Positions 3,724-20,240 of a stretch of DNA of 64,000 nucleotides are shown one piece after another. The DNA lies in assembly GCA_965240325.2 (NCBI GenBank), contig OZ251234.1, forward strand, positions 248,001-312,000. Direction: 5' to 3'. The notes under the pieces were generated by a model, which saw only the letters and a list, made by a program, of their open reading frames with translations, did no database searches and had not been told where the DNA came from. The DNA comes from Rebecca billardiae RCC1528 (lineage: Eukaryota > Protista > Haptophyta). Position 1 is the first letter of the stretch, and every line of letters begins with the position of its first letter. A program made the position numbers and the translations under genes.

Positions 3724-6700
3724 ATGGCCTCGTCGGCGGAGGCGCTGGCGGCGACGATGGAGGCGGGTGTGGGCGCGAGTGTGGAGGTCACGCTCGCCGA
3801 GGAGAGCCTCCGCGGCGCGCGGTACACCGCGCGCGTCCTCTCGCTCGACGCGGACGGGCGGCACGCGCTGCTGCAGTTCGATGCGCTGCTCGCCGACGAC
3901 GAGGAGGGCGAGGGCGGCGGCGGCGGCGGCGCGGCCGGCGGCGCGGCCGGCGGCGCGGAGGACAAGCCGCTCGTCGAGAAGCACGCCGTCGCCGACTGCC
4001 GCCCGCTCCCGCCGCCCACGCCGGACGGCCACCTCTCGCGCGCCTCTGCCGGGTGCATGCTCGAGCTGAGGTACGACGACGGCTGGTGGCCGGTGCAGCT
4101 GCTGCAGACGCTCGGCGGGGGCGGCGGCGCGGGCGGAGCAGCCGGGGGGCGCGGGCGTGGGCGTGGCGCCCGCGGCGGCCGCGGTGGGCGCGGCGGCCGC
4201 GCCGGCCGCGCCGGCCGCGGCGCGGCGTCCGCGGCCGCGACCGACCCGGCCGCGGCCGCCGCCGCGCCCACCGCCGAGCTGAGCTTCAGAGTGGTCTCGC
4301 CGCTGTTCGGGGTGGAGCACGTCGTGACGGCGGCGGAGCTGCGGCCCGCGTGGGAGTGGACGGCGCAGACGGAGGCCGCCGTGCCAGGCGGCGCGCCCGC
4401 GGGCCCGGCCAGCTCGATCGTGCGCGGCAGCTGGGCCATGGCCGCCGCCGCCGCCGCGGCGCCGCCGGCGGCGGGCGCCAAGGCCGCGCGCGGCCGCGGC
4501 GCCGGCGCCAAGGCGGCGCGCGGCGCGGAGGGCGGCGCGGAGGGCGGCGACGGCGCGGGCGAGCCCGAGCGCAAGCGCGGCGCGGGAAGCGCCTCCGCCG
4601 GCGGCACCGCGCGCAGGCGCGACTCCACCGCGAGCGGCGGCGTCGGCACGCCCGTCGGCGCGAAGGGCGCGCGCGGCGGCGCCGCCAAGGGTGCGGCGGC
4701 GCAGGCCGGCAGCGCGGCGCGGGGCGCGGGCGCGGCCGAGCCCAAGCCTGCCGCCACGCCCAAGACGCCCCCGCCCACGCCCGCGTCGGTGCGGCTGTAC
4801 CACGACGGCCGCGGCTGGCGCACGCTCGCGGACCTCGAGGAGGCCGCGGCCGAGCAGCCACGCGGCGACACAGAGGCGGCGGGCGGCGGCACTGACGGCG
4901 GCGGCGGCGGCGGCGGCGGCGGCGGCGGCGCGGGCGCGCCCGCGGCCGCGGACGGCGGCGCGGACGGCGGCGAGGGCGGCGGCGAGCCCACGCGGGAGGC
5001 GGCGGCTGCGCAGGGCGCGGCGCCGCGCACGGCCAACCTACCCACGCTCGTGGTGCCGCTGCGCTGGTCCAAGACCGGCTGGAAGCTTGGTCACGTCTCG
5101 AAGCGCGGCGGCGGCGGCGGCGGCGGAGCCGGCGGCGGCGGCGGCGGCGGCGGCGGCGGCGGCGACGCCGAGGAGGACGAGGAGGAGGCGGAGGCGGAGG
5201 CGAAGGGCAAGGGGACGCCCAAGGCGGCGGGCAAGAAGGGCGGCACGCCGAAGGACAAGAAGGGCGCGACGCCCGCCGCGGACGCCGACGCCGTGCCGCC
5301 CGACGCCGACGGTGGCGGCGGCGGCGGCGGCGGCGGCGCAGACGACGGCGGCTGCGGCGGCGGCGGCGGCTCGGCCTCCAAGCCCGCTCGGAAGAAAGGG
5401 AAGCGCGCGCTGCCCGCCGCGGCGGCGAACGTGCCCGCGAATGGGCAGTGCGACCTGAGCGTGGGCATGCGCGTCGAGGTGGGCCCGAGCGAGGAGGGCT
5501 TCCTCGGCTCGTGGTACTCCGGAATAGTCCGGGAGATCAGGCACGCGCCAAGCGCGGCGGCGGCGGGCGAAGCGGCGGGCGCGGCGGCGGGCGCGGCGGC
5601 GGGCGCGGCGGCGGGCGCGGCGGCCGAGCGCGCGCGGGGGGCGGAGGGCGGCGAGGTGTCGGGGCGCGAGGCGCTCGAGGCGCGCGTGCTGTACGACGCG
5701 CTGATCGACGAGGACGGCGGGCACATCGAGGAGTGGCAGCCCGCCTCGGCGATCCGCCCGCTCCCGCCGCGCACGCCGCCCGCGTGGGCGCCCGCGCTGC
5801 GCGAGGGCGACCACGCGCAGCTGCAGCACGACGACGGCTGGTGGGAGGTGACGGTGGCGGAGATCGAGGAGCGGCCGGAGCGGAGGCGGGGCAGCGCGAC
5901 GCTCTCGAACCCGGGCAAGCTCCGCCTCGCGTACTGCCACCGCAAGGCCGAGGTTGTCGAGGCGAGCGCGCAGCAGCTCAGACCGGCGTGGGCGTGGCAC
6001 GCGGACCGCGTGTGGGGCATGCTGCAGCCCGAGGGCCGGCTGCGCACGGACGCGGAGACGTCGGCGGCGCTGGCGGGCACGGCGTTCCTCGAGTGCGACG
6101 CGGAGGGCGTGTGGCGCGCGCGCGAGCCGCCGCGCGCCGCCGCCGCCGCCGCGGGCGCGGGCGCGGACGGCGGCGCGCGCGCGGATGACGCGCGCGCGGA
6201 CGCGTGGGGCGGCGGCGTGCAGATTGCAATCTCCAGATCGGGATCTGAGTGGAAGCTCTCGGAGAAGCGGCTGGGGCTGGAGGCGGTGGACCTGCTCAGC
6301 GCGATCGCGCCGGGCACGCTGGTCGAGGTCGAGCTGCCCGAGGCGGGCGCGATCGACCCCGCCGCGATCGGCGCGTCCGGCGGCGCGGGCGGCGCGGCGG
6401 GCGCGGGCGCGGGCGCTGGCGCGGCGTCGCACGCTGCCGCCGCGTCGTTTGGCTCGGTCGCGGACGCGTACGCATGCGCTTTCGCGCCGGCGATCGTGGT
6501 GCGCGTGGAGCTGCGCGCGGCGGAGGGCGGCCCGGCGGAGGACGACGCCGACGCCGACGCCGACGCCGACGGCGCCGACGGCGCCGACGACGACGACGAC
6601 GACGGCGACGAGGGCGGCAACAACAGCGCCGCCGCGGACGCGCGCCGGCCGCGGCTGCACGCCGTTCTCAAGTACCTGCCGCGCCCCGGACACGCCGGAC

Positions 6701-18700: not shown

Positions 18701-20240
18701 GCCAGCGCGCGCCGCGCCGTGCGGGCTCGTGCGGCCGCGCGCGCACACAGCACGCGCACCGCGCGTCGCCCGCCCCACCAACCCCGCGGCCACGCTCAGC
18801 ACACCCCCGCCCGCGCGCGCACCCCCCGGCGCGCGCCCACGCCCCCAGGCGGGCTGGGCATCAACCTCACCTCCGCGGACACAGTGGTGCTGTACGACTC
18901 CGACTTCAACCCGCAGGTGGACATCCAGGCGCAGGACCGCGTGCACCGCATCGGGCAGACCAAGCCGGTGCGCATCTTCCGGCTGGTCACGCGCGGCACG
19001 GTCGAGGAGCGGATCGTGAGCCGCGCCTCGCAGAAGCTGTACCTCGAGAAGATGGTGCGTGCGCCCGTGCGCGCGCGGGCGTCTGCGCAGCGCGTCGGCG
19101 CCGCGCAAAGGCCGCGCGGGGCCGCACGGCGCGTGGGCCGCCCGCCTGCGCGCTCGGCCGCGTCGCGCGCGCGGGCGGCGCGTGCCCCCGCGCACCCCGC
19201 GCTGACGGCGGCCCCTCCCTCCCTTGGCGCGCGCGCGCGCCCCCCATCCCGCCCGCACCCCGCGCGCCCGCGCAGGTCGTCGGCGGGCGCGGCGGCGCGG
19301 ACGCGGCCGCCGCTGACGACGAGTCCGCAGACGAGGTGTTGTCACTCGGGGTCTCGCGCTCGGAGGTGCTCACGATGCTCGCCTTCTCGCTCTCGGGCGC
19401 GCTGGACGGCGCGTCGCTCTCGACGGCGGACGTGACGGACGCGATGATCCAGCAGGTGCTCCGCGACTCGTTCGGCTCGAAAGACACGCCTCACGTCGAG
19501 CAGGTGCGCGCGCGCGTCGCGCACGCCGCGCGCGCCGCGCACGGCGCGCAACCGCCCGCCACCCCGGCCGCGCGACCGGTCTGGCGCGCGCGGCCGCGCG
19601 GCCGCGGCACCGCCAGCGTCGCGAGACTCGCGCCGCCCGCGCGCCGACCACGCGCCCGCCGCGCACGCTCCGCCGCCCACCCGCACGCGCGCCGCCCGCC
19701 CTCGCCCCGCGACGCCGCGCGTCGCAGCTCACCCTCGGCGTGGGCGGCATCCAGCCGATGGCGGCGGGCGCGTCCGCACGGCCGCAGCTGCCGGACGTGG
19801 ACGCCCTGCAGCTCTCCTCGTCCATCGACCCGGCCGTGCTCGAGGAGCTGCGCGCGTACAACGAGGAGGGCGAGGAGGAGGAGGAGGAGGGCGCCGCGGC
19901 CGCCGCCGCCGCGGCGGCGGAGGAGGAGGCGGCGCTCGCCGCCGCCGGCGGGCGCTCCAAGCGCAAGCGCACCTCACGCTTCATCGAGGTGCGCACGCGC
20001 GCACGCGTCGGCCGCGCCTGGCCTGCGCGCGCCGAGCCGCCGGCTGTGCACTGACGCGCGCCTGCTGCTGCCGCTGCTGCCGTGCTGCGCGCGCTCTCCG
20101 CCGCGCAGGTGGACGGGTACATGGTGCTCAAGCTGAACGACTACACGCTCGAGGACGGCGAGCCGAGCGTCTTCGGCACTGAGGTCTCGGCCAAGCCGAC
20201 AAACAAGGCACCGGCGGGCCCGCTCAGGAAAGGCTTCTGA
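3724..20240 (+). CDS. Giant multidomain chromatin remodeler (Agenet/Tudor x10, Zn ribbon, AP2, H15-like winged helix, SNF2 ATPase), ~4,395 aa; exons 3724-8608, 8929-10489, 10612-12635, 12856-15447 (one extra base near 14400), 15614-15734, 16025-16371, 17036-17224, 17442-17818, 17977-18132, 18339-18448, 18849-19054, 19276-19503, 19728-19988, 20109-20240
   Basis: All 13 GT-AG junctions are phase-compatible and several rebuild conserved motifs ([37 protein letters not shown]). Exon sum is 13,189 nt = 3n+1, matching the single frame break. Could alternatively be two adjacent genes split at ~14400. Confidence 0.7.
3766..9473 (+). other. Five tandem Agenet/Tudor pairs (approx. 3766-4360, 5455-6000, 6300-7270, 7620-8480, 8584-9473)
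   Basis: Recurrent motifs G..VEV...EEG..GSWY, RPLPP, YDDGWW.V and LRPAW.W, typical of plant tandem Agenet domains; separated by Ala/Gly linkers. Confidence 0.85.
8741..8838. repeat. Exact 48-bp tandem duplication inside intron 1 of the remodeler gene
   Basis: GCACCCCTCCAGCCCTCCGCCGCCCGCTCGGTCCGTCACCCTCTCTGC begins at 8741 and 8789. Confidence 0.9.
11960..12120 (+). other. AP2/ERF-type DNA-binding domain within the remodeler
   Basis: [43 protein letters not shown] fits the AP2 pattern S.yrGV....kW.aqI...gk..hLG.Fdt.eeAA.AYd.A. Confidence 0.9.
14245..14395 (+). other. Linker-histone globular (H15)-like winged helix within the remodeler
   Basis: [46 protein letters not shown] resembles H15 G.S...I.kYi...y....lk.aLk..v..G.l.....fkL. 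Confidence 0.55.
15614..19054 (+). other. SNF2-family ATPase (SNF2_N plus helicase C), ISWI/CHD/DDM1-like core
   Basis: [100 protein letters not shown]. Confidence 0.97.
16632..17030. repeat. Perfect heptamer array (GCCCCTC) x57 in a SNF2 intron
   Basis: 399 bp of uninterrupted 7-mer ending 5 bp before the next exon (acceptor GCCAG 17031-17035). Confidence 0.95.

Follow-up and report, generated by a model that had tools for sequence, protein, structure and literature searches.

The window analysed in this work is a 64,000-nt stretch of contig OZ251234.1 of Rebecca billardiae RCC1528, and coordinates are positions within it unless another sequence is named. Between 3724 and 20240, on the forward strand, it carries a gene that would encode a very large chromatin protein, with tandem Agenet-like units, a zinc ribbon, a polyQ tract and an AP2 domain in its N-terminal part and an SNF2 ATPase towards its C-terminus. 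Its reading as a single nuclear gene of 14 exons and about 4,395 codons is well supported by the sequence. Similarity and fold searches were run exon by exon or domain by domain.

Gene model and domain content

The gene region has a G+C content of about 80%, as judged from the composition of the window, and the open reading frame (ORF) listing contains long open frames in all six frames, so that ORF length alone carries little weight. The G+C content of third codon positions (GC3) stays at 0.9-1.0 in one forward frame at a time, continuously from 3724 to ~20180, with short aperiodic stretches between the coding blocks. At each change of frame we enumerated the in-phase GT-AG pairs and found one clear solution per junction. 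This yielded 13 introns of 120 to 664 nt, all in phase, whose splice sites follow, exactly or with slight variation, a very uniform and GC-rich consensus (donor G/GTGCGC and acceptor GCGCAG/, the slash marking the exon boundary), which should be useful for gene modelling in the rest of the R. billardiae genome. None of these introns is roomy enough for a terminator and a promoter. The summed exons amount to 13,189 nt, which after subtraction of one base gives 4,395 codons and a stop, in agreement with the ~4,400-aa gene proposed in the initial annotation. Its claim of phase-compatible splicing held for the 13 introns and failed at one point inside exon 4, discussed below. The locus is single copy: a second haplotype or copy was searched for in the genome and none was found.

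Exon 1 (3724-8608, frame 0, from the ATG), defined by GC3 and translation, encodes Agenet-like pairs 1 to 4 and the start of pair 5, and ends at a donor (agg/GTGCGC at 8609) lying inside a frame 0 ORF of 2,036 aa (3106-9213). Splice sites delimit exon 2 (8929-10489, frame 2), with Agenet pair 5, the second copy of a GT..DGR.WEV module and an acidic stretch, and exon 3 (10612-12637, frame 1), with the zinc ribbon, the polyQ tract, the AP2 domain and the 5′ half of a second AP2-like unit; the junction at intron 2 is uninterrupted in the ORF of a related metagenomic scaffold, L032. Exon 4 (12858-15447) runs in frame 2 to ~14402 and then in frame 0, with one surplus base. The SNF2 N-lobe is encoded by exons 5 to 7 (15614-15734, 16025-16371 and 17036-17224) and the C-lobe by exons 8 to 11 (17442-17818, 17977-18132, 18339-18448 and 18849-19054), while exons 12 to 14 (19276-19503, 19728-19988 and 20109-20240), traced by tblastn to the relatives P0005, P0022, L009 and L032, lead to a DG..VLK motif and to the stop codon at 20238-20240. 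Repeats were also seen in the introns: within the 664-nt intron of the SNF2 domain, positions 16600-17030 are mostly a near-perfect tandem repeat with a period of 21 nt that reads PRPSPLA in every frame, and other introns of the gene contain (GT/GC)n-like microsatellites.

Five units in the N-terminal part align with the layout of tandem Agenet domains (VEV...G.W/RY, RPxPP, ..DDGWW.. and LRPxWxW in succession), and their sequences make three of these tandem-Agenet-like units solid, with one further unit marginal and another doubtful. Besides Pfam, we scored them with a clade profile, a hidden Markov model built from eight green-algal Agenet-SNF2 proteins only, for which 100 shuffles reached at most 1.3 bits. 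Pair 1 (3760-4362) contains YDDGWW and matches Pfam Agenet over its first half (E 4e-4) and the clade profile at 1e-4; pair 2 (5452-6000) contains HDDGWW (Pfam Agenet 6.4e-9, clade profile 5.6e-12) and pair 5 (8929-9476) again YDDGWW (4.5e-7 and 1.6e-12, respectively). The marginal pair 4 (7876-8484) has lost the cage residues and reaches 0.018 with the clade profile (7.6 bits), and the doubtful unit 3 (6298-7002) shows only VEV...RPLPP, without the closing LRPxWxW strand, and an E of 0.93 that is comparable to the shuffles; neither has a Pfam match. The ten Agenet domains in five pairs counted by the initial annotation are consequently better described as six solid, two probable and two doubtful, Pfam recognising only the first barrel of pairs 1, 2 and 5. 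A profile of the window pairs matched the solved tandem Agenets 5ZWX, 7YT9 and 6IE4 over both barrels, at E ~1e-13 to 1e-14. In ADCP1, H3K9me2 is caged by Y301, W306 and F323, and N302 and D303 contact H3R2 (PMC6318295). By alignment, the cage position reads YDDGWW in pairs 1 and 5 and HDDGWW in pair 2; the motif has disappeared from pairs 3 and 4.

Two further observations concern the Agenet units. A module of ~30 residues, GT.R.G.DGR.WEV......W.P, with no Pfam match, follows them twice in the gene (7027-7125, repeated at 9795-9884 in exon 2), and has tblastx matches in L009 (~1950-2080) and L032 (964-1134). Elsewhere in the same genome, at G000:C14:2554967-2559271 (+), at least three tandem Agenet pairs lie within a 3,328-codon open frame; an N-lobe match of the ISWI-like clade described below was not found on that contig.

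The zinc ribbon (10727-10798) has weak Pfam zinc-ribbon matches, is unique in the genome and keeps all four cysteines and their spacing in L032. It was initially read as CxxC-x15-CxxC; the ribbon is present and its spacing is x16. The polyQ tract, a low-complexity segment rich in Q and A (10955-11188), and an acidic D/E tract (14698-14925) are both visible in the translation, as had been stated. Downstream of the polyQ tract lies the AP2 DNA-binding domain (11972-12112), which scores 19.7 bits with Pfam AP2 (PF00847), under the gathering cut-off of 33.3. Most AP2 domains of the R. billardiae genome also fall under this cut-off, and the AP2 of the window, which has an orthologous unit in L032, resembles other AP2 loci there. 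A sequence search of the PDB with the region gave WRI1 (3e-7) and TEM1 (8e-4) as best non-artefact matches, and its ESM features reached 0.95 to AP2 clusters. The single-sequence AlphaFold model has three strands and one helix, with a predicted local distance difference test (pLDDT) score of 80-85 in the core, and the top 8 Foldseek matches of this model were all AP2 (TEM1, ERF1, WRI1; probability 0.99-1.00), with a root-mean-square deviation of 1.3 Å and 31% identity to ERF1. Four independent lines thus support a predicted AP2 fold despite the sub-threshold Pfam score, and with it the AP2 domain of the initial annotation. A possible second AP2-like unit is split by intron 3 (12536-12634 and 12861-12896; GV.F...W.A...LGY..T followed by ..AA......) and aligns with a contiguous unit of L032 (2530-2700); L032 also has an additional weak AP2 match at 1840-2070 (E 0.074).

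Further along exon 4, a conserved module of ~50 residues (YG..FRQ.EQY..ARYG...AAV.AG, 14247-14402) is strongly conserved in L009 and in P0251, the single-ORF protein of L032. It had been proposed to be an H15-like linker-histone domain, which is not unreasonable, since true H15 domains occur in other members of the SNF2 clade. The assignment found no support: Pfam H15 (PF00538) gave no match on the module even at E 10, hhalign against the true H15 domains of the clade proteins P0236 and P0226 gave 0.2%, profile searches of the PDB with the module returned no H1/H5, the AlphaFold model has two helices only with a pLDDT of 55, and the block is only ~50 residues long, the linker-histone globular domain being a three-helix winged helix of ~75 residues. 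The ESM neighbours of the module, at 0.84, are assorted winged helix-turn-helix families, and a small winged-helix fold is a lead only.

A pre-ATPase helix motif, L..L.PF... (14557-14670), which is found in 24 fetched clade proteins including those of Volvox and Diphasiastrum, and the acidic tract precede the SNF2 motor. The N-lobe (15614-17224), also matched by tblastn of clade proteins, has motifs I, Ia, II and III intact, and the C-lobe (17442-19054) motifs IV-VI; the positions of I, II, III, V and VI were determined directly, motif IV being read from the translation. In stop-free forward segments, Pfam SNF2-rel_dom covers four segments between 15.6 and 17.8 kb, extending into the C-lobe, and Helicase_C lies near 18.9 kb; on the separate exons, the SNF2/Helicase_C matches have E values of 9.6e-25, 1.2e-13, 1.8e-10 and 7e-11. 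The SNF2 ATPase with intact motifs is thereby confirmed, and so is the stated absence of chromo, bromo and HAND-SANT-SLIDE domains: neither these nor a macro domain gave a Pfam match in any forward frame between 3.1 and 20.2 kb.

The last conserved element is the motif DGYxVLKxNxY..GEPSVF (20109-20174), shared across the SNF2 clade. The stop codon stands two residues before the point at which the PHD finger starts in L009, L032 and the Diphasiastrum and Lotharella proteins, and P0005 and P0022 likewise continue into a PHD finger there. A regular-expression pattern and tblastn found no PHD finger in the whole 64-kb window, nor elsewhere on the contig; in the R. billardiae genome, the PHD of the clade is present only in two paralogues. 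A transposable element, young and present in many copies, begins 12-15 nt past the stop (its start taken as 20252-21200); the genome contains at least 40 copies of it, all starting at query position 28-31. Many copies are 98-100% identical, so the element has been recently active. The G+C content drops to ~60-65% in the block 20252-33000. Judged by comparison with its relatives, the window copy has lost a PHD-Agenet tail, plausibly through transposon insertion or deletion.

An ISWI-like clade with interchangeable modules

To place the motor, we compared its exons with solved structures and with the ATPases of other proteins. The best PDB matches of two window exons are ISWI proteins, with 88 bits for the N-lobe and 98 bits for the C-lobe (SMARCA5 1.2e-27). 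The ATPase of the Diphasiastrum protein P0005, used as a proxy for the clade, scored 505 bits with SMARCA5 versus 407 with Snf2, 398 with DDM1, 382 with ALC1 and 365 with CHD1. An ALC1-like placement, considered on account of the motifs PLSVLS.W and LPKKTEV, was rejected on these scores and on the lack of a macro match, and a CHD placement failed on the CHD1 score and on the lack of a Chromo match. Within the ISWI-related proteins, summed exon scores were 430-553 bits for clade members versus 400 for P0187, an ISWI with HAND/SLIDE, and the N-lobe exon was 46-64% identical to clade members versus 38% to HAND/SLIDE-bearing ISWI. Compared within the R. billardiae genome, this exon shares 55-57% identity with the two paralogues that carry a PHD and 41-44% with two ISWI genes that carry SLIDE. 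Because it is closer to clade members than to HAND/SLIDE-bearing or in-genome ISWI, the ATPase is, by sequence, ISWI-like but not ISWI. The two canonical ISWI genes, each with an SNF2 exon and SLIDE, are separate loci at G000:C13:1467824-1470787 (+) and G000:C29:247094-252056 (-). The paralogues, at G000:C1:565856-568357 (+) and G000:C11:1736779-1739126 (-), retain the DG..VLK motif together with the PHD; their surroundings gave no Agenet match.

The closest relatives found were two metagenomic sequences, L032 and L009, since their tblastx identities over the N-lobe exon (74% and 70%, respectively) exceed those of the in-genome paralogues. L032, an 8.8-kb scaffold from JGI with 58% GC and no introns, consists of one ORF broken only by two 10-N gaps. 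Upstream of the motor it encodes Agenet pairs, the zinc ribbon, AP2-like units, two further Agenet pairs, the 50-residue module and the pre-ATPase motif, in that order; SNF2 and Helicase_C come next, and the DG..VLK motif, a PHD, an Agenet pair and the stop close the frame. This order is collinear with window exons 2-14, and the positions of window introns 2 and 3 and of every SNF2 intron are uninterrupted in the scaffold. At ~5480-5540, between the pre-ATPase motif and the ATPase, L032 has a C2H2-like zinc finger (C..C...H....H...C); the window gene has an acidic and proline-rich tract there instead. In L009, a contig of an ENA metagenome (73% GC), a single strand encodes Agenet pairs and then the 50-residue module, which continues without interruption and in frame into the pre-ATPase motif; SNF2, the DG..VLK motif, a PHD and a further Agenet pair follow. 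An AP2 match was not seen in this contig.

Beyond these two, a library search with the N-lobe exon gave best matches of 55-70% identity, made up of the same ATPase type with varied N-terminal modules and often a C-terminal PHD: the metagenomic fragments P0001/P0002, of the L009 cluster, are 70% identical, and proteins of Volvox, Gonium, Diphasiastrum and Adiantum 55-64%. In the longer matches, Pfam identified the N-terminal modules as Agenet, HMG boxes, CW with chromo, or a homeodomain with a true Linker_histone domain; Myb modules also occur in sister proteins. The Agenet module is present in Volvox africanus GIL63033.1 and Gonium pectorale KXZ54072.1, and a search with the Volvox protein added Agenet-SNF2-PHD proteins of Volvox reticuliferus, Pleodorina, Chlamydomonas eustigma, Chlamydomonas sp. 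UWO241, Monoraphidium and Micractinium, SNF2-PHD proteins of Diphasiastrum and Adiantum, and many protist members; there were no seed-plant proteins among the matches seen. Just before the PHD, 39 of 267 fetched proteins have the motif DG[YFH]x[VI]L[KR]xNxY..(GEPSVF), of which volvocine proteins have a second copy upstream of the ATPase, and we found no description of it in the literature. By sequence, the gene belongs to a widespread ISWI-like clade of green algae, ferns, lycophytes and many protists, without HAND-SANT-SLIDE, whose members carry interchangeable modules for reading histones or binding DNA, usually together with a C-terminal PHD.

According to the initial annotation, this architecture is not known from any described remodeler subfamily. 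In one respect this stands, for full-text literature searches found no description of Agenet-SNF2 or AP2-SNF2 remodelers or of the clade, and the five-pair array with AP2 is seen, in the sequences compared, only in the gene, leaving aside its close relatives L009 (Agenet pairs, without an AP2 match) and L032 (Agenet pairs and AP2). In another it does not: Agenet-SNF2-PHD proteins of Volvox, Gonium and other algae are already in public proteomes as hypothetical proteins, and reader-fused remodelers such as CHD and Mi-2 are already known.

The frame break at 14.4 kb and the case for a single gene

The N-terminal and ATPase halves meet inside exon 4, where the coding frame changes from 2 to 0 at CCCG (14400-14403). 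The change is a one-base offset at which third-position composition switches frame with no loss of periodicity, and no consensus intron fits it. Since no forward frame has a stop codon between 14224 and 15707, no gene can end near 14.4 kb. The segments flanking the break lie in a single frame in both L009 and L032. The break is probably a one-base indel; its likeliest source is a C/G run miscalled in the consensus of the assembly, which is of long-read scale (72 Mb, 41 contigs). Sequence comparison supports the Agenet-AP2 and SNF2 halves as one gene, for which the single-ORF architecture of L032 is decisive. Separate genes for the two halves in all orthologues, an outcome that the initial annotation had named as telling against its proposal, is not what we found: Agenet pairs and AP2 are fused to SNF2 in L032, and Agenet is fused to SNF2 in L009 and in annotated green-algal proteins. 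Taken together, we consider it likely that the gene encodes a single-polypeptide ISWI-like remodeler with an N-terminal targeting region in cis, that its PHD-Agenet tail has been lost and that the break at 14.4 kb is an assembly indel.

Several points weigh against this conclusion. Transcription and every splice junction are predicted from the genomic sequence, and at 80% GC chance ORFs are long, so that missing stops are weak evidence of selection. The assembly does contain the break at 14,400-14,403, and should the organism carry it too, no full-length protein would result. As to the relatives, the L032 scaffold, which could derive from cDNA or from genomic DNA, is broken by two gaps, and L009 is covered 1.7x and itself contains frame changes. 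Support for Agenet units 3 and 4 is poor, and the AP2 scores below the Pfam cut-off. Finally, the window copy lacks the PHD that both close relatives and both paralogues possess, and its stop codon lies next to a transposon, which could mean a decaying copy.

This last point leads to the alternative that survives best, although we regard it as unlikely. The window copy would be recently broken, a pseudogene in the making: the frameshift would be genuine, the transposon would have removed the PHD-Agenet tail, and the locus could yield no more than an Agenet-AP2 protein cut short, or an ATPase lacking its N-terminus and initiated at the ATG at ~14,478. Such decay would account for the frame break, for an ORF that ends where L009, L032, P0005 and P0022 run on into the PHD and for the proximity of a young element with copies up to 100% identical; Agenet units 3 and 4 are degenerate, and the two paralogues with an intact PHD could cover the function. 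Against decay, the exons downstream of the break all keep a GC3 of 0.9-1.0, all seven helicase motifs are intact and the downstream splice sites all retain consensus and phase. Moreover, a single break in 13.2 kb, located in a C/G run, is the typical signature of a consensus indel.

We find it quite improbable that the assembly is correct and the gene intact, with a short non-consensus intron behind the frame change. By eye, candidates of suitable length (1 modulo 3) can be found, namely a GC-AG pair at 14406-14460 (55 nt) and GT-AG pairs at 14433-14499/14502 (67-70 nt), but they are unlike the GTGCGC...GCGCAG of the 13 other introns and below the shortest of them (120 nt), their sequence has coding-like third positions in frame 0, and excising one would shorten a segment whose length agrees with L009 and L032. 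Least probable of all, and hardly credible, are two adjacent genes, the first an Agenet-ribbon-AP2 gene that ends at ~14.4 kb and the second an SNF2 gene whose start is the ATG at ~14,478: the switch of frame with an ATG 75 nt further on, the land-plant members P0005 and P0206 that lack N-terminal readers and begin at the pre-ATPase motif (as in the Diphasiastrum SNF2-PHD proteins) and the separate Agenet array at C14:2554967-2559271, with no matching SNF2 N-lobe on its contig, would suit such an arrangement, but the upstream ORF cannot end in a region stop-free in all forward frames, coding periodicity is undiminished with no space for a terminator and promoter, the 50-residue module, pre-ATPase motif and SNF2 share one frame in L009 and P0251, and many annotated green-algal proteins join Agenet to SNF2.

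Proposed function and comparison with known systems

On the reading of one intact gene with an assembly indel, a mechanism can be proposed. The ISWI-type motor, whose ATPase activity is deduced from homology, would translocate DNA on the nucleosome and slide nucleosomes. The N-terminal targeting region would replace, in cis, the linker-DNA sensing of HAND-SANT-SLIDE and the readers borne by partner subunits: tandem Agenets would supply multivalent methyl-lysine reading, for which H3K9me is the best guess by analogy with ADCP1, the AP2 (and the ribbon) would supply DNA binding, and the acidic tract may mimic or compete with histone or DNA contacts. Because these modules are swapped across the clade, they may be what directs where the motor acts. 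The sequence itself establishes the domains, the gene structure, the conserved single-ORF architecture of a relative and the membership of the clade, whereas an active ATPase, the marks and the DNA motif recognised, and expression and function of the gene are inferred. Of the self-targeting remodeler put forward by the initial annotation, the integration of histone marks and a DNA motif remains reasonable in view of the ADCP1/AGDP3 matches and the AP2 fold, though equally inferential, whereas linker or dyad binding through H15 is, like that domain, without support.

More tentatively, as an extension that we think possible but would not favour, the gene might be the most elaborate member of an undescribed and ancient sister subfamily of ISWI, in which HAND-SANT-SLIDE gave way to plug-in modules, some of them binding DNA (AP2, HMG, H15, homeodomain, Myb) and others reading histones (Agenet, PHD, chromo, CW). 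An ADCP1-like H3K9me array, an AP2 and a motor would then make up a one-polypeptide remodeler directed to heterochromatin or transposons.

The targeting of remodelers to nucleosomes is usually ascribed to accessory subunits. In the clade, such parts belong to the motor polypeptide itself and are exchanged from one lineage to the next, so that nature has supplied a set of domain-swap experiments on an ISWI-type engine. The window copy unites a multivalent array of methyl-lysine readers of the type found in the plant HP1 equivalent, an AP2 and a motor, so one recombinant protein could test whether reading of a mark and of a DNA motif jointly direct nucleosome sliding. Fusions of Agenet to SNF2 occur widely among green algae, where their only annotation is as hypothetical proteins, and the clade reaches a fern (Adiantum) and a lycophyte (Diphasiastrum).

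Several known systems can be set beside the gene. The green-algal Agenet-SNF2-PHD hypothetical proteins belong to the same SNF2 clade, with 55-65% identity in conserved exons, and have in common with it N-terminal tandem Agenets, the pre-ATPase L..L.PF motif and the DG.xVLK.N.Y motif. They are 850-1,700 aa long, with one Agenet pair and a C-terminal PHD, whereas the window gene has ~4,395 aa, five pair-like units, the ribbon, the AP2 and the 50-residue module, and no PHD. A precedent for lineage-specific royal family readers exists in the Chlamydomonas and Volvox SNF2 proteins that gained PWWP domains (PMC3457860), the reader there being PWWP rather than Agenet.

The Agenet array itself is closest to the Arabidopsis H3K9me2 readers ADCP1/AGDP1 and AGDP3 (PDB 6IE4-7, 5ZWX, 7YT9), which also have arrays of several tandem pairs and the same Pro-rich inter-domain loop (RPxPP). 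The YDDGWW of pairs 1 and 5 aligns with Y301/N302/D303/W306 of ADCP1 (PMC6318295). ADCP1 is a stand-alone reader without an enzyme, whereas the window array, whose putative mark specificity is assigned by analogy, would be fused to a remodeling motor.

For the motor, ISWI (SMARCA5, Isw1, Arabidopsis CHR11 and CHR17) provides the nearest ATPase core among solved structures. ISWI takes its reader and DNA-binding modules from partner subunits; the window gene differs in lacking HAND-SANT-SLIDE and in carrying large N-terminal reader and DNA-binding modules in cis. In this respect its design follows the logic of CHD and Mi-2, in which chromodomains, with or without PHD, are fused to a Snf2 ATPase so that histone readers act in cis with a sliding motor. 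The ATPase of the window gene belongs to a different subfamily, its readers are Agenet domains rather than chromodomains, and an AP2 of the sequence-specific type is added.

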